Below, piece by piece: positions 27 to 18,000 of a DNA stretch of 64,000 nucleotides. The notes beneath the pieces were generated by a model. It worked only from the letters and a program-made list of their open reading frames with translations. It was not told the DNA's origin and made no database searches. Position 1 is the stretch's first letter; every line of letters starts with the position of its first letter. This DNA comes from Tubulanus polymorphus. Its lineage: Eukaryota; Animalia; Nemertea. The stretch spans positions 14,682,275 to 14,746,274 of the forward strand of contig NC_134032.1 of the NCBI RefSeq assembly GCF_964204645.1. Reading direction: 5' to 3'. Made by a program: the position numbers and the translations under genes.

Positions 27-3000
27 CTTCGAGAAATGTTTTTCGATATCCTGCATCAACAGATCGAGTCGTTTGATACCCGGGTGATTGGCTATTTGAA
101 CATGAATTAAACCGTTATCAGCGACGTGTGTGACGACAACCTCTAGAATGCCACCCTCCTAGAAATACACAAAATATTAACAATTTATCCTAGAAATACA
201 TGGAATATGAATACTTAAACCTGGAAATTTTTGACTAATCACTTCGCTTTCAATATCATAAACTCGAATAGCAATGTTTTAAAGTTTCGCAAATATTTTT
301 CTAGATTTTTCTAATTGCGTGAGTTTTCGAGGAAAGGATGAACCCCGATACAAATTGACCATCCTCCCTCGGCAGGGATTAGAACCAGATAGAATCGTTA
401 GAGTTAGCAATGGCATGACCCCCTGCCAGAGTAGACCCGGTGCGCAGGGACATGCGCAGCTTTGCTGCACGAAAACTTGCTGCACCAATCAGATCGCTCG
501 TTGTATAATCGCTTAGGTAAATTTCACGGTGGAACTATAAGTGGGAAAACCCAGGCTAAAATAAAACAGGATTTCTGATTGGTTAATAATGACATCATCT
601 AAGCTGCGCATGTGGTCTAGTGTGGCAGGGTTTCGTACCGCGGCAATCTCAATGTCATCAGGTTCGAATCCCAGCCGGGGGAGGTAAGAAATTGACGGGA
701 AATACCTCCGGTAAAACTGGACTAAACTCTTCGTCGTTGACCGTGTTAGTGATTAGATCGTTGACATTGACGTCTGCTGCAGTAGACGTATCGTACAGTA
801 ACACCGACAGACGATCCGACCGATCTAAAACCTCAGCTATGAATGTTTTATTCAGCAGTATCTGAATAAGGGTCTCGATGACGCTGTCTTTCTCGTTGAA
901 ATCCTCGAGTCCGGCCAGCGAGCACGTCACCGCCTGGAATAATAAACGAAAAACATTTTAATCAACTCAGTTTAAAACAGTAACTGATTAAACATAACCA
1001 ACTTAACTCTGTTTTGAGGGTAACTGTTCTCCAGAGATATCATTCTGTTTTGAGGATTACACGTTCACTACCACCCTGATAATACAGTGCTGCCCCCTAG
1101 AGTTCTACTTCGAATTTACTCCTATGTTGCCAATACAGCTATATCGTAGTGCACTATCGTTCAAATATTGACCAATCAGCACCGATTGAATTTTTTCTGT
1201 AGCAGCTAATTTTGGTTGAATAAACTAATTTCAAACGTGAGTATAAAAATTTGTTTGATTACTACATATTATATGAAGATTAACATATTTGAGGAGGACA
1301 CCCTCGGGCCCTAAGAGCTGTATCTGAAGGGGGATGCCCTCGGTTGCAACTGGAAGAACAATTGTGTCCGCTGAAACATGAATGCGCTAGGGAATAGACA
1401 GGTTTCTGCTACCGCGTCGCAACAAGTTGCTTGAGGTTGTAAGGCAGACCAACGCTAAATTCCAACAAACAAACAAACAAACAATACAAAATTGAAATCA
1501 ATGAGAGCAAACTCAAATTTATTACCATATACTACAATATATGAGCGAATGATGAAGGAAATCAGAAAGAGAAAGAAAATCCTGGGTCGTTGCGCGTATT
1601 GTTAGTTACCAGTATTTCATTATGATTGACAAGTGCTGCCATTTTTCAAGAGGATAATTACTAATTGCATCAATACACCGCAGTGCGATGTTTTTCAAGA
1701 GGATAATTACTAATTACATCAATACACCGCAGTGCGATGTACTAGCAAAATCCATCACTGATTTATACACCGCACTGAAAGGTTTAAGTAAAGTTATTCA
1801 GCACTGATTTATACACCGCGCTGAAAGGTTCAAGTAAAGTTATTCAGCACTGATTTGTACGACTTGCCACAATTCAATATCTTCCTCTAAACTGCCTCCG
1901 TAGGCGACCGTTTCATGCCAAATTTTCTCCAATTTCAAATTCGCTTTTTTCGCTATTTCGGCGAGAATTTCCATGAATCCTAAACCGCTACCGAAACAGA
2001 TAACGGCCCGCCCGCCCGGACGTAGGTGTCCGTGGGCTCCCGTTATAAAACGGCCGATAGCCTCGTAATCTCGGTCAATTAAAGAGCGATCCAACATCGT
2101 TAATTCATCTGCTCTATCGACGGGCTCGTACAGATATGGAGTATGCCAGAAAATTAAATCAAACTTTTCATCTTCGCGAATATTTCCGTAAACGTCGGAA
2201 TATCGCACGTCTCCCGGGACTGCGTAACGCTCAAAATTCACTTTAGTATTCTCTAAAGCTTGTCGATTGATGTCGGTCGCCAACACGTAACTAAGCTTCG
2301 ATTTATTGCGTAAATAATAAACGACGCTGACGCAACCAGTACCGCATCCGATTTCTAACATTCTAGCGCCATCTACTGTCTCTTGCGGTAGATTCAGCGC
2401 CATCGACTCGTAACCCGTCATATAGTAAACGTCGTGAAAATTTACGAACTTCTCGCCGCAAAATTCAAACTCGTGTCGACCTCCGTCTTGTGATATCAAT
2501 TTCTCATTTACTCCAAGCAGACGCCTACAGTCCGCCACGATCTCATTAGTTTTGTCCAATTTCTTCTGATCCAAAGAAGTCGTCATTTTAACAGTTTCTC
2601 CACAAAGCAGTTTATGAATATAACAAGTAAAAATGTGCCTTTATCATTCATTTGTTATCAGAGGTCAGAGTTTTATCTTTAATGTATAAATTGATGCTCT
2701 AGTTTTGGTTCATTCTTATCTCGTTTGACTTTTACCTCCTCATAAAACCAATTCAGCGATCGATCTTCAATCTCAAAAACCAAACCAAATATCGACGGAG
2801 AAAATTAATGGAACATCTAAGAGTGTGCAGATATATTATTTGAAACCATAGGATTTAAATGAAGTGTTAGTTTGATTCTATTGTATTTAATTTCACAGTT
2901 TATAACAGAAAATGAATAAACTGTGATACTAAAACACCAGTCAAATGAGATCAGCTTTTACATATATCACACTATGACTGAACATTGGAGTGAACTGGCA

Positions 3001-6000
3001 CCATTCATGACTGCATGTTACATGCACCAGTCACTAGTGACATGTATCTCTACCAAACCACTAACCCTAGGTCACATGACCACCAGTGACATCATACTCC
3101 TAGCCAGCCAATCAAACCCTAACCCTAGCCCTAGGTCACATGACCACCAATGACATCATGACTCTAGCCAGCCAATCACATATAAACCCTAGGTCAGCTG
3201 ACCAACTGTGACTTGTAATCCTAGCCAGCCAATCACAGATCACCCCTAGGTCAGCTAAACATCTGTGACATGTAATCCTTCTCAGCCAATCACAGTTCAC
3301 CCCTAAGTCAGCTGACCAACTGTGACATGTAATTAGAAGTTTTGTTGAGAGAACAGAAAGCTTTGTCAGTCCCCACAGAAATCCATTCACGCTCTTGGGA
3401 CTTTTAGAGTTATCACTTACATCATTGATACAATCAAAAAAAAGAAATGAATGCATCATTAAATATCTTTTTTTTCATGAATACACAATACAAGAGAACT
3501 TTATTGAACTCAATAAAATTTAATAATGAAAATAATTCAAGAGTGTAATACAATGAAGAACAGACAGGTGACAGTTATATAATAATGCAATCAAAAGGGC
3601 CGGCAGCGCGTAACGCACACAGGGCTCTGTCACCAGAAACCCAGAGTGGTCCAAACGCTTGTCGTATAAACTCAATACAGCTCAAGATCTCCGGATAACA
3701 TTTCACTGTTCGTGCTAGATTTTCACCAGTTTCATATAATTCACTTCATTTGCTTTTTCATTCAGCGCCCTCTACTGTCTGTTCTGGTAAATTCAGCGCC
3801 ATCGTATTGTTTCCCGTCAAATAGTAAACCTCGTGAAAATTAACAAATTTCGCGCCGCAAAATTCAAACTCGCGTCGACCTCCGTCGTCTGCTATCAATT
3901 TCTCATTTACTCCAAGCAGACGTCGATAGTTCTCAACAATCTCATCGGATTCGTCAAATTTTTTCTGGTCCAACATGGGCTCAGTAATTACTAATTATAT
4001 AAGATTTTAGGGATGATTTGGTAAAAGTTACACAGACACTTGCCACAGTTCTACATCGCCGGATAATATTTCACCTAAGAAAATTACTTCATGCCAAATT
4101 CTCTCCAACCTCCGGTTCACTTTCAGCGCTTTTTCCTTAAGAACTTCTATAAATCCAATATGGCTTCCGAAACTGAAAACTGCCTTTCCGCCCGGGCGTA
4201 GGTGAGTTTGGGCCCCAGTAATATAACGCCCGAGAGCCTCGTAGCCGGGGTCGGCCATAGCTCGATCTAACATCGTCAAATCTCCGGCTTTTTCAATCGG
4301 GAGATAAAAACAAGGAGTATGCCAGAAAATCAAATCAAACTTTTCATCTTCGCGAATATTTTCGAACACGTCGGAATATCGCACGTCTCCCGGGACGGCG
4401 TAACGCTCAAAATTCACTTTAGTATTCTCTAAAGCTTGTCGGTTGATGTCGGTCGCCAACACGTAGCTAAGCTTCGATTTATTGCGTAAATAATGTACGA
4501 CGCTGACGCAACCAGTTCCGCAACCGATTTCTAACAATCTAGCGCCATCTACTGTCTGCTCCGGTAAATTCATTACCATCGAATCGAAACCTGGGTAATA
4601 ATATACATTTCGAAAATTGACAAATTTTTCGCCGCACAATTCAAACTCGTGTCGACCTCCATCGTCTGCTATTAACTTTTCATAGATCTCAGCGAGACGT
4701 CGCGATTCCGTAAACATTTCGTTAGTTTTCTCCAATTTATTCTGATCCAAAGAAGTCGCCATTTTAACAGTGTCAGTTTATCGAGTAGAAACAAGCGATC
4801 ATCAGTATATGGACTGAGAGCGCAGTGCCTCGAGTAGACACAATTAGATATGATCATAGTTCAGTTATGAAAATATATCATAGTTACGCTAAAAAACATT
4901 TATGCCTTGTTTCTCCTTTCTGGTGAGTCCACCTTGACCCCACCAGCTGCCTATATACCCTGCTAACCATAACAGACCCAGGGGCCGGTTCCTCAGTCGA
5001 GACTTAAGTCCAAAAATGGTCTTAAATTTTAAGACTGGTCTTAAGTTGTTGGATTGGTTATAGAACTAAGACTTAAATTGGTCTTAAGCCTAAGCCATGA
5101 CTATGGAACTGGGCCCAGCAGTTTTAGAAATGAACTGATTACAAATTTCATCACAGTTAACAACAGTGAACCACCAGCCGATTAGGAGAAACAAAGTATC
5201 ATTTCAGTTTAGCCTTATATAATGTCTGACCTGATTCATGTGTCTGGCGCTCTCATTTTTTTTAAAATATCAAGCTCATCGTCCTATTTAGTTAATTCAT
5301 AGATAAAGGGGTCATCTAAGAAAATCATCTGACAAGAGTAAAGTTCAATATTTCAGGGTTGTACCAGTATTTGCTGGGCCCTGGCTGAAGAGGTGCAGGG
5401 ACCCCCGCTGAGACCTATAGATAAGTTTGGGTTGCACAGTTTCCATAGTAAGATCTACATTATGAAGTGAATGAAGATAACAAGAGGCCCATGGGCCCAT
5501 ACTGCGGTATTAAGTACCCGCTCTCATCTACCAGATAACGAACGAGAAAAATGCGATCGAATAACTTTTTGGACCATTAAATCAGAAATCTGGTGACGCT
5601 ACGTTGTGGGGAATAATTGAAACATTTTTTTAGTCATTTTCAGCTGTTTCTAATGTTTTACGTGAACGGAGTGACAATTTGAAGTTAATATGAAAATGAG
5701 AAGAGTCGGCGCTTTTTTTTCGTACTACTATTTTTTCGATCCATTTTACTAGCATTGGCGAGATACGACTTTTAGAGTCTCAATTTAACATTCTTCATAG
5801 ATAAATATTATTGATTCTTATTGATTTATTCCTGTATCGATGTTATTGTAGTTCCTCCACTGGAAGGATTTGTAATGAACAGAGTTCTCGGAGATTATTT
5901 TGAAACGCTTTTATACAAGATATTTGTATCAATAGACGTCAACCAATGCTGAAAATGATAAAACAAATTTAATTCCCCATCTACATAATGCATACAGCTC

Positions 6001-9000
6001 GAGATCTTCGCACAAAATTTCGCTGTAGGTCAAAGTTTCGTGCCAGATTTTCTCAAGTTTCATATTCACTTCATTTGCTTTTTCGTTCAGAACTTCAATG
6101 AATCCATAACCGCTTCCGAAACTAAAAACTGCCCTCCCGCCCGGGCGTAGATGTTTGTGGGCGCCGGTTACAAAATGCCCGATAGCCTCGTACGCGGGGT
6201 TGACCAAAGCTCGGTCCAGCATAGTTAAATCTGCAGCTTTATCAATCGAGAGATAAAGATAGGGAGTATGGCAGAAAATCAAATCAAACTTTTCATCTTC
6301 GCAAATATTTTCGAACACGTCAGAATATCCGACGTCTCCCGGGACGGCGTAACGCTCAAAATTCACTTTAGTATTCTCTAAAGCTTGTCGGTTGATGTCG
6401 GTCGCCAACACGTAACTAAGCTTCGATTTATTGCGTAAATAATGTACGACGCTCATGCAACCAGTACCGCATCCGATTTCTAACATTCTAGCGCCATCTA
6501 CTGTCTGTTCCGGTAGATTCAGCGCCCCCGTGTTGTAACCCGGGTGATAATACACGTCGCGTAAATGAACGAATTTCACGCCACAAAATTCAAACTCGTA
6601 TCGACCTCCGCCGTCTGCGACCGATTTCTGATTGACTTCTTGCAGACGTCGCGATTCCGTCAAAATCTCGTTAGTTTTCTGATTCAAAGAAGTCGTCATT
6701 TTAACAGTATTTTTTTTTCTTCAGTCTATTGAGAGTAAGAACAATGCACAAGCACAGAATACACCGTAAAATGCTATTCGCTTGAGAGACAGCTGTGTGT
6801 GTGTCTGATCAGATTTATAGCTACGTCTACACTAGCATTTTGTACCCGGGGGGGGGGGTTATGCGTCTCCGCTACTATGCGTCTCCGCTACGCTCCAAAC
6901 ACGGGTTCAATGCAGAGTTTTCTGCAAAACCCGGGTTTTAGAAACCCTTCTTGAAAGAGAAGAGCACACTTCGCATTGAACTCGCGTTTGCCTAAAACTC
7001 CACATTTTTTGCTAGCGTAGACAGTGAACCCGCGTTCAATGCAGGATTCGGGCGCCACAATTGACCTTGAACTTGCACTACAGATGTTGATTCTTATTTA
7101 CCGGAACTGTGTTAGGTGTAGACGCTACTCACAGGTTTTCATTGGACCCGGGTATGTTGAAACCCAGGTACAACGCGCTAGTGTAGACAAGGTTTATGCG
7201 TATACTGCGGTTGTAGTGTTTTTTTTTTTTAAATCAGGTAACTCATTCCATGGGGGACCAGTTATTCAGTTCATTCATTCATAAGTCCAGGGATTATCTC
7301 AGAAAATTGGTTTTACAAACTGCTGCAGTTGATCACACCATCTGATGGGATAGCCAGTAACACGTTGGTCGAGGTCATCGATCAGTTTCAGCTTATCCTT
7401 CTTACTCGGTGAAACTACAAGTCTGTAGGGTCGGTTCAAAAGGGTCAGTTCCTAAATTCAACTGAAGAAAAAAGTTTGACCAAAACCAGTTTATTTTCTA
7501 AGCATTTTACACTTTATTTTTGTTATACAAGAGATATCATATTCACTAACAAATAACTATAGCGTTTAGCAGTACATAATTCTAATTAAGGAAAATGTTA
7601 ATTACATGGTCCCCACAGTTATATGAATTCAAAATTTCCAGGTTTTTCCCAAGAATTTCACGGGTGATTTTTCAATTTTCCCAAATGGAAATGAACACAT
7701 ATCGTCATGCAACAGTCAACATTTTAGCGGTGACAGGTTGATAAAGGTGATTTTCAAGGGAAATTGCTGAAGAGAGCCGCCCTTGGCAAATGCGATACGT
7801 GAAATGTAATGAATTTCCCAAGTATTTCCCTGATTTGAGGAAAATTTTCAAATTCCCAAATATTTCTAAACCGGGAATTATCATTTCAAAATTCCAAAGT
7901 TTTTCCCAATTTCCCCGTTCTGTGGGAACCATGTTATGAATACGTATCATACGGAATAAGCAAAGAAAAGCATCGAAATAAACGTGCAATGTATGCAATT
8001 GCGTCATCTATTACAGCATCAATAAAATAACTAAGATAATCCCCACTTGCCACAGCAGTTTCGTCCGATACCTCATTAGCATATCGTTTAAATATTTTAT
8101 GTAAAGTTACTCGGCACTGATTGGTTCAACCTGCCACAGTATGACATCCTCCTCTACAGTACTGCCGTAATTTATCATTCCGTGCCAGATTTTCTCCAGT
8201 TTCAAATTTTCTTTCTTAATCTTTTCGTTCAGAATTTCAAAGATTCCAAATCCACAAAAAACTGCCCGCCCGCCCGGGCGTAGGTGCCCGCGGGCTTCCA
8301 TTATATAACGACTGATAGCCTTGTACCCGGGGTCGGCCAATGACCGGTCCAGAATCGTCAAGCAGTCGGCTTTATCAATTGGCATGTAAACACAAGGAGT
8401 ATGCCAGAAAATCAAATCAAACTTTTCATCTTCGCGAATATTTTCGAACACGTCGGAATATCGCACGTCTCCCGGGACGGCGTAACGCTCAAAATTCACT
8501 TTAGTATTCTCTAAAGCTTGTTGGTTGATGTCGGTCGCCAACACGTAACTAAGCTTCGAATTATTACGTAAATAATGTACGACGCTGACGCAACCAGTTC
8601 CGCATCCGATTTCTAACATTCTAGCGCCATCTACTGTCTCTTGCGGTAAATTCAACGCCAACGAGTCGCAACCCGTCATAAAGAAAACATTATGAAAATT
8701 AACAAATTTTTCTCCGCAAAATTCAAACTCGTGTCGACCTCCGTTTTCTGTTATCAATTTCTCATTCAATTCTAATATCTGACGACCTTGAGTCAATAGC
8801 TCCGGTACGTCGAGTTTTTCCTGATTGGCAGACGCCGTCATTTTTAACAGCAGTTCTAATAGAGTTTCAGCGAACGTAATTCAGTGCTATCTCAATAAAC
8901 GTTGAACAGTAGATGGCAGAAAAAAAACCAGCGAAAATAAATAAATAATATAAATACCATAAATAACAAAATATAGGACAAATTTCATTATCCAGCTGTC

Positions 9001-12000
9001 ACAGACGAGTCTAATATGGCTCGTGTCTAATTTGAGAGCGCTCGATACTAAACACAAAGCGAAGTGTGTCACTTCTGGAACCTGTAGCAATGACCCGCGC
9101 TAAAATTTGGAAAAAGTTGAAGGCCATGAGTAATGACTGCATAGAACAAACTACATTAAATAGACGTTTTCTATGAAATAAATTGACTTACACTTGAACT
9201 GGATGTAACAGTCAACAGACATTAGACGAAACAGTCGGGCCAAATTGGCACGGAACAGGCTCGCGCCAAATTTGGCCCGTGCCTAATAAGAGAGCGCGTT
9301 CACACGTAAACCATTCACTCGATACTAAACAATGCTCAAACAAAGCGAAGTGGATCATTTCCGGTGCCAGTTGCAATTCAAACGCAATCATTTGTCTGGT
9401 GCTAAAATTTGGCTCGGGCCTCGTCCAACATTTTTGGTCGGGCCAAATTTGGTCCGGGCCCAACAGGCTCGGGCCCATTTTGCACCCGTGTGAACAGTTG
9501 TTCCGGGCCAAATTTGGCCGGGCCAAATATGCTCGTGTGATAGCGGCTACAATCAACTGACATTAGACAAAACAGTCAACAGACATTAGACATTAGACAA
9601 TCAACTCGTGTAGATTTTCACACACTTTTGTCTCGCGTTAAGCATAAATAAATCAGGGCCCGGTTCCATAGACAGGGCTTAGACTTGACTTAAGACCGGT
9701 CTAAGACAAACTTAGTTCTATAGCAAATCTAACGACTTAAGACCTGTCTTAAGGTTTAAGACCACTTTTGTCTCGCGTTCAGCATAAATAAATCAGGGCC
9801 CGGTTCATTAGACAGGGCTTAGACTTAAGACCGGTCTAAGACAAACTTAGTTCTATAGCCAATCTAACGACTTAAGACCTGTCTTAAGGTTTAAGACCAC
9901 TTTTGGTCTTAAGTCTTCACTATGGAACCGACCCCAGGGCCGTATCTCGATAAATTGTGTCCACGTTTTTCCCTAAAGTTACTCATCAGCGCTTATCTGT
10001 AGGATTTCCCATAATTCCAAGTCTTCAACCATTTCTCCAATTTTCACCAATTCGTGCCAAATTTTCTTCAGTTTCAAGTTTGCTTTTTTCGCTTTATCAT
10101 CGAGAACTTCAAGCATACCGTACGCGGCGGAGTAAGCCATTATAACCCTGCCGCCCGGACGTAGGTGTCCGTGGGCTCCGGTTATAAAACGCCCGATAGC
10201 CTCGTAGCCGGGGTCAGCCATAGATCTGTCCAACATCGTTAAATCATCAGCCATTTCCCTCGGCACAAAAGTATAAGGAACGTGCCAGAAAATCAAATCA
10301 AAATTTTCATCTTCGCGAATATTTTCGAACACGTCGGAATATCGCACGTCTCCCGGGACGGCGTAACGCTCAAAATTCACTTTAGTATTCTCTAAAGCTT
10401 GTCGGTTGATGTCGGTCGCCAACACGTAACTAAGCTTCAATTTATTGCGTAAATAATGTACGACGCTCATGCAACCAGTTCCGCATCCGATTTCTAACAT
10501 TCTAGCGCCATCTACTGTCTGTTCCGGTAAATTCAGCGCGATTGGATCGAAACCGTCCAGATAAAAAACATCGAAAAAATTAACAAATTTCACGCCGCAA
10601 AATTCAAACTCGCGTCGACCTCCGTCTTCTGTTATCAATTTCTGATTATTTTCAACCAGTTCTCGGCCCTCTTCTAACATCGCTGTCCGTTTAGCAAGTT
10701 TTTCTTGATCGAGAAAAGTATCTGCCATTTTGCGAAGGAGTATTACTAACGATAAGGATAGTAGTTAGACAGACGTTCAGACAGCAGCCGTAGACAGATA
10801 TTCAGACAGCAATCGTAGACAGACCTTCAGACAGCAATCGTAGACAGACGTTCGGACAGCAGCCGTAGACAGATATTCAGACAGCAATCGTAGACAGACC
10901 TTCAGACAGCAGCCGTAGGCAGACGTTCAGACAGCAATCGTAGACAGACGTTCAGACAGCAGTTGTAGACAGGGATTCAGACAGCAGCCGTAGACAGATG
11001 TTCAGACAGCAATCGTAGACAGACGTTCGGACAGCAGCCGTAGACAGATATTCAGACAGCAATCGTAGACAGACGTTCAGACAGCAGTTGTAGACAGGTA
11101 TTCAGACAGCAGCCGTAGACAGACGTTCAGACAGCAGCCGTAGACAGACCTTCAGACAGAGTCGTAGACAGATATTCAGACAGTTGCAGGTAGTTGGCAG
11201 CGCTCGCTGTCACACTACATCAAATGAGCAGTCAACAAAATTTTGGAAGCATAAAAAAACAGCAATCACTGACAAGTGACATAAACCACACACGTACCGC
11301 GCGCTAGACCCGGATAGGAATAAAAAAATCTACTCAATTTAAAAAATAATTTATCAATAATCTGATAATGAAGTGACCCGAGAACCAGGCTTAAAAAAAC
11401 ACGTTGAAAAGTCCTGAATTGCAAGCGATTATTTCTGATAATTATTATATCCACAGCTGGAATTTCACTTTAAGTAGATTTTCTAAAGAATTGAGTTATA
11501 TCCCACAAAATATCAATAGAATATCAATAGAATATAAATGTGACAGGCGTCTGGTTATCATCACACTGCTGTATTTGAAAGACTCTTCATTCGACACGAT
11601 ATAAAATTCAGAAATCAATTAACGTTTTCGTATAGAGTTTGATAGTTTGATATCTGTTTTATATCAATATTGTAGACAGCTACGTATTCAAGTCTTTTCA
11701 TTCGAATATTCGAGTTCTAAAGGGTATTATTAATAAATCTTAACCCTCCCTCCCTCCATTCTCCACGAAAAAACAACCACCAAACTGCTACTGCTATTAT
11801 ATCTGTTCAGTTCGCAACTGTCTATATGCTGTACATATGAGCCCGAACTAACAAACAGTTTGCCAATTAAGGAGAAATTGGCGATGAGATTTTCATTTTA
11901 TTACCGACTTATCAAAATTCGACAGATTGTGATAATTTTCACAAAAAAATAATCCGCATTTTTAAAAAGATTTTACGATAATTTCGATGAATTATCCGAT

Positions 12001-15000
12001 ATTGTATACAGTTATTGATCGCCGATTGTAAGAATGTTCCACAGTTCTGCGTCTTCGTCTACAGATCCGATAAACACCTTTTCGCTCCAAAATTTCTCCA
12101 GTCTCAAATTGGCTTTCATCGCTTTTTCGTTAAGAACTTCGAAAACTCCGATGGCGCAACTGAAACCGAATATCGCCCGCCCGCCCGGGCGGAGGTGTCC
12201 GCGGGCTTCGGCGATAAACCGACCGACAGCCTCGTAGCCGGGGTCGGCGATACTACGATCCAACACGCTCAATTCGGCAGATTTATCAGCAGACACGTAC
12301 AAACATGGAACGCACCAGAAAATCAAATCAAACTTTTCATCTTCGCGAATATTTTCGTAAACGTCCGAATATCGCACGTCTCCCGGGACGGCGTAACGCT
12401 CAAAATTCACTTTAGTATTCTCTAAAGCTTGTCGGTTGATGTCGGTCGCCAACACGTAACTAAGCTTCGATTTATTGCGTAAATAATGTACGACGCTGAC
12501 GCAACCAGTTCCGCATCCGATTTCTAACATTCTAGCGCCCTCTACTGTCTGTTCCGGTAAATTCAACGTAACCGAATCGTATCCGGGAAAATGAAAGACG
12601 TTTTGAAAATTAACGAATTTCTCGCCACAAAATTCAAACTCGCGTCGACCTCCGGCGTCTGCTATCAATTTCTCATTCAATTCTACCATTTGACGACCTT
12701 CGGGTAGCAGGGCGTCGGCTTTGGCCAATTTTTCCTGTTCGGAAGAAGTTGCCATTTTTGAACGGGTATCAAGCAGAGTTCTAGTATAGACGATTCACAT
12801 TAGATACTACAGAACTGGTTCATGTAGTCACAATGCTTAATACGCTGATAACTATAACACAGATCGTTTTGAAAGCAAAATGTAGGACAAAAATATAATC
12901 GACTGAATAGACGGAATACTAAACAGAATACAGTCAGCAGATCGAGGGGTGGATCTATGGTCTGATTCGGATCGAGGGGCGGATCTACGGGCTGATTCGG
13001 ATCGAGGGGCGGATCTACGGTCTGATTCGGATCGAGGGGCGGATCTACGGTCTGATTCGGATCGAGGGGCGGATCTACGGTCTGATTCGGATCGAGGGGC
13101 GGATCTACGGTCTGATTCGGATCGAGGGGTGGATCTACAGTCTGATTCGGATCGAGGGGTGGATCTACGGTCTGATTCGGATCGAGGGGTGGATCTACAG
13201 TCTGATTCGGATCGAGGGGATGGATCTACGGTCTGATTCGGATCGAGGGGTGGATCTACAGTCTGATTCGGATCGAGGGGATGGATCTATGGTCTGATTC
13301 GGATCGAGGGGTGGATCTATGGTCTGATTCGGATGGGGGGGTGGATCTACGGTCTGATTCAGCGAGGGTTGCATCCATGTAATATAGGGCATATCACATA
13401 CTGAAGTGCACCGCGACTCATCGGAAAATGTGAACTCAGAACCCGCTTAGTTCGGTTGACCTGGGACTGGGAAATCCTTCCCGAATAATATGAAATACGA
13501 ATTATATGCTCTCATCAGAATGGAAATAACTTAGAAGGGACTGAAATTTAGTCCGAAATAAATGAAAATCCGAATAAAACCGATATGAATTAAGCAAGTT
13601 ATACCATACAGAGAACTAGCTATGAATTTAAACTTTTCAGGAATCCATTACTAATAATTTATCTTTTTTTCCTGGTAAAATTTCAGGGCAACAAGACATT
13701 CAAAGGAGGCGCACACAAACCCCTGCACCCTCTGTAAAGGAGGCGCACACAAACCCCTGCACCCTCTGTAAAGGAGGGAGGCGCACACAACCCATGCACC
13801 CTCTGTAAAGGAGGCGCACACAACCCCTGCACCCTCTGTAAAGGAGGCGCACACAACCCCTGCACCCTCTGTAAAGGAGGCGCACACAACCCCTGCACCC
13901 TCTGTAAAGGAGGGGCACACAACCCCTGCACCCTCTGTAAAGGAGGCGCACACAACCCCTGCACCCTCTGTAAAGGAGGCGCACACAACCCCTGCACCCT
14001 CTGTGAAGGAGGCGCACACAACCCCTGCACCCTCTGTAAAGGAGGCGCACACAACCCCTGCACCCTCTGTAAAGGAGGGGCACACAACCCCTGCACCCTC
14101 TGTAAAGGAGGCGCACACAACCCCTGCACCCTCTGTAAAGGAGGGGCACACAACCCCTGCACCCTCTGTAAAGGAGGCGCACACAACCCCTGCACCCTCT
14201 GTAAAGGAGGCGCACACAACCCCTGCACCCTCTGTAAAGGAGGCGCACACAACCCCTGCACCCTCTGTAAAGGAGGGGCACACAACCCCTGCACCCTCTG
14301 TAAAGGAGGCGCACACAACCCCTGCACCCTCTGTAAAGGAGGCGCACACAACCCCTGCACCGTCTGTAAAGGAGGCGCACACAACCCCTGCACCCTCTGT
14401 AAAGGAGGCGCACACAACCCCTGCACCCTCTGTAAAGGAGGCGCACACAACCCCTGCACCCTCTGTAAAGGAGGCGCACACAACCCCTGCACCCTCTGTA
14501 AAGGAGGCGCACACAACCCCTGCACCCTCTGTATTCATAAAGTATCAAACACATATCGCAAATAAAAACCTAGCTATATAAAATGTCATGAATCTGATCG
14601 AGTTGGAAAAGTTCTGAAAAAAAAAATTTTTTTAAATTTAAAATTTGAATTTACCTGATACGAGAGAGTGTTGAATTGCGGTTTAATCGGAAAAATCTGT
14701 TTGACGTCGATCGTATCCGTGTCGCCGTGATCGAGAAAATAACAAACAACGCCGTCGCCTTGACGACTGATGACCTTGATTCTGGATACGACGCCGTCGT
14801 TGAGCATGGCGGCGTAAACCGACCCGACGCTCGGCGACGACTCGCACGCGTACTTGTTACTACGGTAATAATCGCTCATCTCGACCTCGAGGTCGTCGAG
14901 TAGATCCTGAAATTCCAACGAAACATCGTCTCAGTTATCTATTCGTTATTAACCCTTTAGACTCGAGATACTGTTTATTAACCCTTTAGACTCGAGATAC

Positions 15001-18000
15001 TGTTTATTAACCCTTTAGACTCGAGATACTGTTTATTAACCCTTTAGACTCGAGATACTGTTTATTAACCCTTTAGACTCGAGATACTGTTTAATAACCC
15101 TTTAGACTCGAGACACTGTTTATTAACCCTTTAGACTCGAGATACTGTTTTTTAACCCTTTAGACTCGAGATACTATTTATTAACCCTTTAGACTGGAGA
15201 TACTGTTTATTAACCCTTTAGACTCGAGATACTGTCGCCACCAAAAACTGCACCGCCGAACAAACTTGGATTTTTCGCATCAAAATTTCCAAACTACGGA
15301 TATTGTTTTACATAAGACACGGTTTTCAGTTCAGTGGTAAGGCCTGGCTAAAAAGAAATACATAGAAGGACTTTTTCGGCAATCTAAGACCCAACAGGAG
15401 GGACTTTATGACTCGGAAAGGAGTACTCGCCAGTAAAATGAGGAAACTGTGATTATTGTTTACATGAGAGTATATTGAGAAACCAGCGGCGGATCCAGCC
15501 TATCTCGAGTACCGAATGTTGTGTGTGGGGGGAGGGGGATCTTGAGTACCACCTCATTCTCAATACAGTCAATATTTGCCTGTATATGACGTCACATACA
15601 AACATGGATCATGTTTGTCTCTCTCCGATACATGTGGGGGATACATGTGATACCTGGTAGTGAAGTGGTGCACCACAGGCCCTCATTTCCAATTTGTTTT
15701 TTATACGATAATTTCTGTTCTAAAATTGCGGAGATAGCGTCTGAGAGACACTAAAATTTCGAAATTCTTCGGGCGAGGACCCCTGAATTCCCCACCGGGG
15801 CATCGGGCCTTCAACCAGCTACTCGAGAGACACAATATCACTTTAACCCTTTCAGTGCTGACAAATCAATAAATACCCTATAGTGCTCGAGATAATTTGA
15901 AAATTCTAAAAAATTCCGCCCTAGTGTGTTGAATAACGGGAATAGCACTAAAGTGCGTCTACACCGCAGTGCGGTGTATCGTTAGTTATTAGTATTTTAC
16001 TATGTTTGACAGGTGCTGCCATTTTTCAAGAGAGATAATTACTAATTACTAATTACATCGATACACCGCAGTGCGATATGCTAGCAAAATCCATCACTGA
16101 TTTATACACCGCACTGAAAGGTTTAAGTAAAGTTATTCAGCACTGATTTATACACCGCACTGTGGTGTAGACGCACTGAAAGGTTTAAGTAAAGTTATTC
16201 AGCACTGATTTATACACCGCACTGTGGTGTAGACGCACTGAAAGGGTTAAGTAAAGTTATTCAGCACTGATTTATACACCGCACTGTGGTGTAGACGCAC
16301 TGAAAGGGTTAAGCAGTACTCAGATTTGGCCCCTCTGGATCGAACGATCGAGAGATACTTACAGAAAACTTTTCGCCGACTAATCGAACGATCACTTCCG
16401 TCGTGCCTTTGATATGTGACACGAAAACGTCGATAAATTGTTTTTGAGGAATTTCTAATAAATCTGCAAAGAGAGAAATACGTTTGATTAAAGCGCGCAA
16501 CAAAGTGAAACGAACACGAACGTCGATTGGTCTCTTGGCAACAAGAAGCTACTCCCACCCCCATGATAAAATTGACGCGTCCCCGCCTCATTGCGCATGC
16601 GTGCAACAAAATCATAAACGTCTTCATGGCGGTTGTTCTCGCCGCCGATTTATAGCTCAATTTTCGGGAATATTCATCAATCCTTCGACTCGTCAAAAAA
16701 TGGATATAAAAACGACAACTGCACAATTCTACTGATTCGATTAAAACCTATTTGAGATATTTACGCTGAAAATTAAGAGAAATATCTAAAAAAAAGATCG
16801 ATGCCAATCGAATATGAATTGACTTAACTCATTCACTCCAGAATATTCAAATTCAAAATCGCCCGCTGCAGACGGAATTTCCGCCATTTTGGTTTACAGG
16901 GGTAAGTTCCACTGGTACTTCCCATGATCAATAGTGTCAATGACCCGTTGCGTAGGGGATTCCATGGAATTCCCTCACATAATTTATGATAATGTTTACT
17001 CGCATTCTGATTGGTTAAAATCACGTGTAGTTTGAATGTAGGCAGTGTTTACATTTGTGACATCATGAAAGCCGCTCTCAGCAACGGTAAATACCGGCGA
17101 GCTGCTGACAGCCACGTAGTCGTTGAGTTCCCCGGCCAACTCGTAACAGAAAGACTGTATTCATTTACCTGGTTCAACGATTCGCACTTTAACGAGGCCT
17201 CGTTTAACGAGTTCGTCGTTAATCAAAACCCGATCCGAATTCCAGACTTTTACTTCGCACGTTTCATCTGCAAGAAAAACCGAAAATAACCGACAACGAA
17301 AATTATCGAAACCGACCGTCGATCGTTGGCGGGAAGAACTTTCGAATATTTGATCAGAGAATTTACCGGTTATTTCGACAAACTCCATTTTGAGGGGTTT
17401 GTCGCCCCCTCCGACGAGTTCCTCAATGGCAGACGTGCACGGTTGTTCATGATGCCCCTAAACATAGATAAACAAATCATTAAACTCTAGAACCTATTAA
17501 AAGGGTTGAATATTTCGAAGGATATGTTTTAGTTATTTAACATAAGACATAGTAGGCACACCATCAAACTCAGATATCACTCTCAAATCAAAAGAGATCT
17601 GACTTGAACGGAGTCTACTGTACCATCCAACTCAGATATCACTCTCAAGTCAATAGATCCGACTTGAGCGGAGTCTACTGTATCATCAAACTCAGATATC
17701 ACTCTCAAGTCAAAAGATCAGACTTGAGCGGAGTCTACTGTACCATCCAACTCAGATATCATTGTCAAGTCAAAAGATCCGACTTGAGCGGAGTCTACTG
17801 TACCATCCAACTCAGATATCACTCTCAAGTCAAAAGAGATCTGACTTGAACGGAGTCTACTGTACCATCCAACTCAGATATCATTGTCAAGTCAAAAGAT
17901 CAGACTTGAGCGGAGTCTACTGTACCATCCAACTCAGATATCATTGTCAAGTCAAAAGATCCGACTTGAGCGGAGTCTACTGTACCATCCAACTCAGATA

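Follow-up and report, generated by a model that had tools for sequence, protein, structure and literature searches.

Probable gene conversion in the SAM-binding core of an array of old methyltransferase paralogs in Tubulanus polymorphus

Results

Six intact, intronless open reading frames (ORFs) for MTS/HemK-like SAM methyltransferases, each of ∼245 amino acids and all on the minus strand, lie in the 64,000-nt stretch of the nemertean Tubulanus polymorphus genome that was analysed here (the window), and a 240-nt core within each of them is nearly the same DNA sequence in every copy. Comparison of the sequences makes it very probable that this core is homogenised by recurrent intrachromosomal, non-allelic (interlocus) gene conversion among nine copies of the family on contig C8, six of them in the window. 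The array consists of old paralogs from a methyltransferase family of the MTS/HemK superfamily that is lineage-specific and lacks introns, and a Tudor-domain gene surrounds it; that the duplications are ancient follows from flanking synonymous sites that are near saturation and from spacers that cannot be aligned.

The first gene, M1 (1840..2586, 248 aa, core at 2149-2388), has the motif IV sequence HTPY, and its core, with six private changes, is the most diverged of the homogenised set. M2 (4028..4762, 244 aa, core 4325-4564) reads HTPC at motif IV, as does M4 (8107..8841, 244 aa, core 8407-8646), which has lost three codons downstream of the LRPGG motif. M3 (5929..6699, 256 aa, core 6274-6513) shares HTPY with M1 and has a longer C-terminal tail that is unlike that of the other copies, along with private R>G, R>C and W>C changes that lie within the core or at its edge. 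The last two genes, M5 (9979..10728, 249 aa, core 10288-10527) and M6 (12012..12755, 247 aa, core 12318-12557), carry HVPY and CVPC, respectively. BLASTN self-comparison also revealed a minus-strand pseudogene fragment of the same family at 3675..3973, in which the N-terminal ∼72 codons (3759-3973) are fused to a short remnant of the C-terminal end (3675-3765), with no core; the genome search recovered it at C8:14686035-14686250 with 71 per cent identity to residues 4-75 of M1. Homology between units ends 3-35 nt beyond each coding sequence, and BLASTN detected none between the spacers of the six units.

The homogenised block, defined as the best-fitting segment of low synonymous divergence, comprises codons 67-146 of M1. 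Nucleotide identity among copies has a median of 95.8 per cent in the core, where perfect runs have a median length of 72 nt, whereas the N- and C-terminal flanks are only ∼65–67 per cent identical and their perfect runs reach only ∼16–18 nt. The contrast is also seen at third codon positions, where identity across the six copies is 0.87-0.98 in sliding windows at codons ∼61–150 and 0.39-0.66 elsewhere, and codons for the same amino acid differ in 68 of 1107 comparisons (6 per cent) inside the block against 475 of 1315 (36 per cent) outside it (P = 0.003 by column permutation of block versus rest). A segment test for low synonymous divergence gave log-LR values of 173 and 386 (P = 0.003), and identity at fourfold sites is 0.88 in the core and 0.64 in the flanks, the value at saturation being 0.25. 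A previous reading from sequence only had described a near-identical block of ∼250 bp in the six copies, third codon positions included, between diverged ends and spacers; each of these elements is reproduced here, and its block coordinates are accurate to ∼10 nt. A 40-nt string that it had singled out occurs once in each of the six copies without a mismatch, with a chance expectation of 0. A sliding-window comparison, of the kind that it had proposed for synonymous divergence, places the drop in the core.

That reading had treated the six genes as the whole homogenised set, which is right for the window copies and too small for the set. Of ∼24 intact paralogs genome-wide, exactly nine share the block, all on contig C8 and spread over ∼320 kb, the three beyond the window lying ∼19 kb, ∼24 kb and ∼310 kb before its start. 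NG86 pS among all nine spans 0.3-0.77 in the flanks but only 0.03-0.16 in the core, and core pS rises to 0.21-0.45 when the C8 copies are compared with clade-1 copies on contigs C3, C5, C10 and C11. Core DNA identity is 94-97 per cent within C8, 85-90 per cent to other clade-1 copies and 70-77 per cent to clade 2, the last comparison taking in both intact copies and fragments. A genome-wide DNA search found no separate donor cassette: apart from two scraps of ∼40 nt, the core occurs only inside the paralogs. A pseudogene donor is likewise ruled out, since the only such fragment close by contains no core. Only three members of the family are annotated, under the NCBI name ‘release factor glutamine methyltransferase-like’, and the nearest homolog outside Tubulanus (P0004, 39 per cent identity) comes from a 1,050-bp Logan contig of run SRR5023860.

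Several lines of evidence argue that the core has been exchanged between copies. In the flank tree the C8 genes are scattered among copies from other chromosomes: C8_14374k pairs with the C11 copy (support 97/96), M5 and the copies ∼19–24 kb before the window start group with the C10 copy (97/97), and M2 and M3 fall among C3 copies. A C8 clade is rejected by the flanks (delta lnL 199, p-AU 7.6e-31) and is not rejected by the core (p = 0.35). Conversely, the flank grouping of M2, C3_22651k, C8_14374k and C11 is rejected by the core (p = 1.5e-5), although for the other two of three clades taken from the flank tree this short segment gives no significant rejection (p = 0.13 and 0.08). The trees are therefore incongruent in a manner that follows chromosomal location.

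A runs test was carried out with our own implementation of the Sawyer/GENECONV logic, rather than with the GENECONV program, on 427 polymorphic sites defined on all 14 clade-1 copies (lowest attainable P 0.001). The 21 most significant pairs (P ≤ 0.002) were all C8-by-C8, and their significant identical runs lay inside codon columns 70-162 with endpoints that differed between pairs; the run shared by M2 and M4 is 138 nt long and spans 53 polymorphic sites. When the six window copies were tested alone (global SSCF P = 0.0005) the longest runs fell mostly outside the core, because the homogenised sites are no longer polymorphic among the six. Variation within the core is itself reticulate. Thirty-one of its 240 sites vary, 11 of them parsimony-informative, and 44 of the 55 pairs of informative sites are incompatible under the four-gamete test; private changes number 0-6 per copy. 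There is no signal of GC-biased conversion, GC4 being 0.49 in core and flanks alike. Recurrent ectopic conversion confined to the SAM-binding core, which the sequence-only reading had proposed, is thereby supported by the dS contrast, the location-linked tree conflict, the identical runs and the four-gamete incompatibilities.

The enzyme class is clear from sequence profiles and a predicted structure. All six copies match the MTS domain (PF05175) at 42.6–48.5 bits against a gathering cutoff of 23, M1 scoring 48.5. The AlphaFold2 model (pLDDT 90.9) shows alternating beta and alpha elements, with strands at residues 74-79, 98-105, 125-129 and 142-148 corresponding to beta1–beta4, and Foldseek returned >500 matches to methyltransferases. 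The Rossmann-like fold, the GxGxG motif I and the acidic residue that ends beta2 are those of a class I methyltransferase, and both motif I (EIGCGTG) and the LATD motif show little or no variation across 27 sequences. As judged from the model, the homogenised block corresponds to beta1–beta4, the half of the Rossmann fold that binds SAM, and stops a single residue short of motif IV, so that the cofactor-binding label it had been given is correct. Motif IV is N-x-P-F/Y in C10_4172k and in clade 2 (NFPF, NVPF and NAPF in the latter) and H/C-x-P-Y/C/N in the other clade-1 copies. Together the modelled fold and the motif IV seen across the family point to N-methylation as the predicted reaction.

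Discussion

A simple mechanism may account for why exchange is confined to the core. This segment (motifs I–III and the strand into motif IV) is under the strongest amino-acid constraint in the protein, and would therefore retain enough DNA identity for pairing between copies. Repeated short-tract conversion among the nine C8 copies over ∼320 kb has very probably gone on to remove synonymous and non-synonymous differences within it time and again, in a self-reinforcing manner, as homogenised sequence would remain a good substrate for further conversion. Tracts would end at the core edges because the flanks, with their low identity and short perfect runs, fall below the homology needed; such a threshold would probably suffice to confine conversion to the core without any contribution from selection.

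It might be expected instead that selection preserves divergent substrate-binding ends while conversion maintains a shared cofactor module, as in a recognition- or detoxification-type repertoire. The regions that vary (N-terminal helix and hairpin, motif IV loop, C-terminal half) all border the substrate site in enzymes of class I. Motif IV differs between copies, the highest regional dN falls in its loop (0.48, M4-M6), and all six ORFs are intact. However, regional flank dN/dS across 11 pairs lies mostly at 0.15-0.45 and in no region exceeds 1 consistently, and a GY+F1X4 codon model fitted on a fixed topology put omega at 0.255 in the core (tree length 1.88 substitutions per codon) and at 0.317 in the flanks (7.99), all of these being rough values. 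This indicates purifying selection on the flanks at the level of whole regions, and the tract ends can be explained by the homology threshold alone. An adaptive repertoire of this kind is therefore rather unlikely, and the suggestion in the sequence-only reading that conversion is resisted, or diversification selected, in ‘specificity regions’ is not supported. Given that homology dependence can explain why conversion stays within the most constrained segment, a constant core between variable ends is, short of site-level tests, no evidence of diversifying selection. Intact ORFs and dN/dS below 1 do suggest that the genes are expressed and functional.

A bolder version of the same idea, quite unlikely in our estimation, is that the array came from bacteria and forms a lineage-specific repertoire of methyltransferases for small molecules such as toxins, alkaloids or xenobiotics. 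Here the N of the catalytic motif IV would have given way to H or C, conversion would keep a common SAM-binding module and could spread changes at its edges, and selection would diversify the N-terminal cap, the motif IV loop and the C-terminal half.

There is some reason to ask whether the core is constrained at the nucleotide level (through small-RNA targeting, mRNA folding, or an element with a regulatory or antisense role), with no exchange between copies, since core synonymous identity is raised even between chromosomes and between clades. Fourfold-site identity is 0.74-0.79 in the core and 0.50-0.55 in the flanks for comparisons between chromosomes, which amounts to roughly twofold lower synonymous divergence in the core, and 0.51 against 0.30 between clades 1 and 2. 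Conversion restricted to C8 is by itself insufficient to produce this between-chromosome excess, which needs either older or interchromosomal conversion or some synonymous-site constraint. A universal constraint is nevertheless argued against by clade 2, within which the difference between core and flanks is nearly absent (0.49 versus 0.45). The C8 copies, moreover, share their synonymous states with one another and not with their flank-sisters on C10, C11 and C3, and core variants are shared reticulately. No Rfam family is found in the whole window at gathering thresholds, and folding of the core RNA does not surpass that of shuffled controls (z = -0.91). Nucleotide constraint in place of exchange is thus very improbable. 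Codon-usage bias was also considered as a cause and rejected, base composition at fourfold sites being nearly even in the core.

Polishing of the assembly, in which multi-mapping reads pull nine cores toward a consensus, is scarcely credible: short-read polishing can homogenise near-identical repeats, but it blurs only sequences that are already ∼95 per cent alike and cannot create a contrast with ∼65 per cent flanks, nor does it fit private core substitutions (1-6) in every copy but one, subsets of copies that share variants mosaically, a pattern that reaches a copy ∼310 kb away, identity that steps down by location and clade, or tract endpoints that vary between pairs.

Recurrent conversion among the C8 copies is, then, a clean new example of a known process in an unstudied methyltransferase family. 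As domain-scale concerted evolution it is unusually clean, with nine ancient paralogs, saturated flanks and a single 240-nt half-domain exchanged across up to ∼320 kb. It follows that trees or dS values computed from entire genes of this family would come out wrong, the core lending the copies an apparent youth and an apparent monophyly by chromosome. With its numerous intronless MTS-type members, non-canonical motif IV and bacterial look-alikes, the family may also merit attention for nemertean secondary metabolism.

Comparison with known systems

The annotated name of the family invites comparison with HemK2/MTQ2/N6AMT1 (KMT9), the release-factor glutamine N5-methyltransferases. Both have the class I Rossmann fold, the MTS domain and recognisable motifs I–III, and Foldseek TM-scores against N6AMT1 chains are 0.7-0.79 when normalised to N6AMT1. 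In contrast to these enzymes, the Tubulanus proteins carry an extra N-terminal helix and hairpin of ∼65 residues in the AlphaFold2 model, and in place of the catalytic motif IV, NPPY, they have the four H- or C-initial forms given above in the window and NxPF in clade 2. At 52.7 and 55.0 bits, TIGR00537 scores stay far below the curated cutoff of 87, and those for PrmC (TIGR03534) are 44-46 bits against a cutoff of 199. Animals typically carry one HemK2 gene, whereas the Tubulanus family has ∼24 copies.

The best Foldseek matches (E 9e-14 to 1e-12) are instead to GenN (gentamicin 3''-N-MTase, 5u18 and related), apramycin N-MTase (23lq), Asc-Orf2 carbamoyl N-MTase (9l4q) and RsmC (2pjd); the best profile matches are RsmC (2.8e-13) and apramycin N-MTase (1.1e-11), and the nearest look-alike clusters from a language model are bacterial MTS proteins of 230-250 aa. 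Sequence identity to the bacterial natural-product N-methyltransferases and RsmC is only 16-22 per cent, the likeness having been assessed on fold and profile. A bacterial origin by transfer is a lead rather than a finding.

Mosaic interlocus conversion has been described in the tandem HMA4 triplicate of Arabidopsis halleri (bioRxiv 10.1101/2025.10.29.685298), in Caenorhabditis paralogs (PMC3966223) and in the GOT1 paralogs of Tigriopus (PMC3728101). As in those systems, the conversion rate varies along the gene so that homogenised segments lie beside ‘islands’ of divergence, exchange is favoured by proximity on the same chromosome and by local sequence identity, and detection is through conflicting patterns of similarity and GENECONV-type runs. 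Unlike them, the Tubulanus paralogs are ancient rather than young, with flank dS near saturation and unalignable spacers, the participants number nine with one of them ∼310 kb away, and the tract that is converted corresponds to a single half-domain in the enzyme structure.

The methyltransferase array and its family

Six intact open reading frames of 244–256 codons, here M1–M6, lie on the minus strand between 1840 and 12755 at a spacing of 1.9–2.2 kb, and each has a hit to the MTS domain of Pfam (PF05175; 42.6–48.5 bits, cutoff 23). Between M1 and M2 a minus-strand pseudogene fragment of the family (3675–3973) retains the N-terminal ∼72 codons and a short C-terminal piece, the homogenized core having been deleted. 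A Tudor-domain ORF (PF00567, E=1.9e-10) stands just past M6 on the same minus strand (14589–14918), and an ORF at 661–930 has no Pfam match; the remainder of the window holds few ORFs and many minisatellites, which gives it a eukaryotic look. Four minisatellites occupy spacers next to M5, M6 and the Tudor exon; three have periods of 25 nt (10691–11234), 30 nt (12880–13401) and 29 nt (14888–15293), and the fourth, of 33 nt (13645–14670; ∼31 copies at 97–99 per cent identity) gives spurious long ORFs in several frames.

A six-frame search of the 268-Mb genome (77 contigs; the window is C8:14682275–14746274) found about 24 intact paralogs and several fragments. Three lie elsewhere on C8 (14.663, 14.658 and 14.374 Mb), two each on C3, C10 and C7, one each on C11, C5, C4 and C2, and six on C6, five of these inside 60 kb of sequence close to 4.8 Mb. 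That second cluster (C6:4807140–4867700, loci L016–L020) consists of clade 2 paralogs, outside the clade (clade 1) that unites the C8 copies with relatives on C3, C5, C10 and C11, and its genes are near-identical along their entire length (4-fold-site identity 0.95 in the core, 0.99 in the flanks), a sign of recent duplication or of conversion over the whole gene, unlike the core-only pattern of the array. Annotated proteins in the searched collection cover only 3 of the ∼24 intact paralogs and none of the nine C8 copies; two NCBI proteins, each named 'release factor glutamine methyltransferase-like [Tubulanus polymorphus]', have coding loci that coincide exactly with paralogous loci.

A homogenized block between diverged flanks

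The sequence-only reading held that conversion had homogenized the cofactor-binding core, third codon positions included, while flanks and spacers diverged. The 40-mer that it quoted does occur once per copy with no mismatch, and third-position identity across the six copies is 0.87–0.98 at codons ∼61–150 versus 0.39–0.66 elsewhere. A two-breakpoint likelihood scan on synonymous-codon differences, restricted to codon pairs encoding the same residue, placed the best segment at M1 codons 67–146, that is, on the minus strand, at 2149–2388 in M1, 4325–4564 in M2, 6274–6513 in M3, 8407–8646 in M4, 10288–10527 in M5 and 12318–12557 in M6. Far from being uniform, synonymous differences are concentrated outside this block (6.1 per cent inside versus 36.1 per cent outside for the six copies, 5.9 versus 34.2 per cent for all nine C8 copies; column-permutation P=0.003 in both). 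Median nucleotide identity is 95.8 per cent in the block, 66.7 per cent in the N-terminal part and 64.6 per cent in the C-terminal part; homology between units is detectable only to 3–35 nt beyond the coding sequence, and no spacer matches another. The pattern first noted is thus confirmed.

An AlphaFold2 model of M1, built from a 27-sequence alignment (pLDDT 90.9, pTM 0.90), has a long N-terminal helix (residues 4–33) and a hairpin (37–50), followed by a Rossmann fold. Because its strands at 74–79, 98–105, 125–129 and 142–148 are beta1–beta4, the block is, on this model, the SAM-binding half. It ends one residue short of the position of the Asn of amino-methyltransferase motif IV (M1 codons 148–151, window 2134–2145, and equivalents in M2–M6). 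This motif reads NFPF, NVPF or NAPF in clade 2 and NAPY in the C10 copy at 4172 kb; in the window it reads HTPY, HTPC, HVPY or CVPC. In the clade 1 copies other than this C10 copy the Asn is replaced by His or Cys and the aromatic residue sometimes by Cys or Asn. Since the C10 copy keeps Asn though its flanks are sister to the His-bearing M5 group, the His may have spread through conversion at the tract edge or arisen more than once. The nearest solved structures by Foldseek E-value are GenN, Asc-Orf2, N6AMT1/KMT9 and RsmC, and by sequence profile RsmC, apramycin N-methyltransferase and HemK. The NCBI name is unearned, as scores against the HemK2 and PrmC models fall far short of the cutoffs and NPPY is absent.

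Exchange versus constraint

Amino-acid constraint on the core is real, because this is the best-conserved part of the protein throughout the family, and within C8 pN is 0.01–0.04 in the core versus 0.2–0.3 in the flanks. Constraint by itself, however, would shorten distances in the core and leave it with the topology of the flanks, and the core instead groups by chromosome, contrary to flank history. In the flank tree (GTR+G, 507 columns; the core has 234) the C8 copy at 14.374 Mb pairs with the C11 copy (support 97/96), and the C10 copy groups with M5 and the two C8 copies near 14.66 Mb (97/97); M2, M3, both C3 copies and the 14.374-Mb/C11 pair form a moderately supported group (93/93), unresolved inside, with M1 one node outside it (85/83). 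Forcing the nine C8 copies into a clade costs the flanks 199 log-likelihood units (p-AU 7.6e-31) and the core only 2.8 (p=0.35). Conversely, the core rejects the flank clade of M2, C3_22651k and the 14.374-Mb and C11 copies (p=1.5e-5); two smaller flank clades fit it worse by 10 and 14 units (p=0.13 and 0.08). Terminal branches of C8 copies measure 0–0.03 in the core versus 0.012–0.24 in the flanks. Such grouping by chromosome against flank history is the mark of exchange between neighbours.

Synonymous distances behave likewise. NG86 pS in the core is 0.03–0.16 among the nine C8 copies and 0.21–0.45 between these and the clade 1 copies of C3, C5, C10 and C11; in the flanks it is 0.3–0.77 in all comparisons. 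Identity at 4-fold sites (saturation 0.25) is 0.88 in the core and 0.64 in the flanks within C8, 0.79 and 0.55 between C8 and other chromosomes, and 0.74 and 0.50 among other chromosomes. Core synonymous divergence is about two-fold lower also between chromosomes, as it is between the two clades; among clade 2 copies core and flanks hardly differ (0.49 versus 0.45). Any of three processes could produce this: conversion that predates the dispersal of the copies, rare conversion between chromosomes, or mild constraint on synonymous sites in clade 1. No RNA element is indicated, as no Rfam family reaches its gathering threshold anywhere in the window (minimal hammerheads may score below it) and RNA stability of the core is ordinary (z=−0.91). 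No GC bias accompanies the conversion.

Runs of identity argue in the same direction. With polymorphic sites from 14 clade 1 copies (427 sites) permuted in order, each of the 21 pairs with the strongest signal (P≤0.002) joins two C8 copies, which share identical runs of 19–53 polymorphic sites (55–138 nt) inside codon columns 70–162, with ends that vary by pair (116–162 for M2–M4, 95–134 for M3–M6, 70–89 for M6 and the 14.658-Mb copy). Among the nine copies 31 of 240 core sites vary and 11 are parsimony-informative; all four gametes occur in 44 of 55 pairs of informative sites and each copy carries 0–6 private changes, so that the pattern fits many short exchanges better than a single replacement. 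When the whole genome was searched with the core DNA, matches lay only inside paralogs, at 94–97 per cent identity among the nine C8 copies, 85–90 per cent for other clade 1 copies and 70–77 per cent for clade 2 (intact copies and fragments), and no stand-alone donor was found.

An artefact of polishing is very unlikely: polishing can blur only sequences already near-identical, and it cannot explain the grading of identities by chromosome, a participating copy ∼310 kb distant, the pair-specific tract ends or the private core substitutions. The private and reticulate core variants also show the assembled copies to be distinct. Codon bias is rejected because core 4-fold base composition is nearly even.

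Confinement of the tracts

Conversion confined to the SAM-binding half-domain, as first proposed, is therefore very probable, being borne out by the synonymous contrast, the conflict between trees, the identical runs and the reticulate variants. The accompanying idea of a 'variable pocket' repertoire under selection is unsupported at the regional level, flank dN/dS being mostly 0.15–0.45 (11 pairs, unsaturated ones included) and omega about 0.32 in a fixed-topology codon model. Positive selection at individual flank sites is possible; the highest dN is in the motif IV loop (0.48 for M4–M6).

Homologous pairing depends on runs of perfect match. Copies on different chromosomes, which do not exchange, are 87.5 per cent identical in the core, where perfect runs have a median of 28 nt, versus ∼66 per cent and runs of 15–17 nt in the flanks. 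Because only the core keeps long runs, there is no need to invoke selection for diversity, in agreement with flank dN/dS below 1. The segment under strongest protein constraint would remain convertible, conversion itself would maintain that convertibility, and the rest of the gene would drift beyond its reach.

Sequence identity and proximity are known to favour conversion (PMC3966223), and in HMA4 an effective conversion rate that varies within genes yields mosaic divergence (bioRxiv 10.1101/2025.10.29.685298). The process seen here is of this known kind, mosaic interlocus gene conversion, and the array is a clear new instance of it in an unstudied nemertean methyltransferase family.
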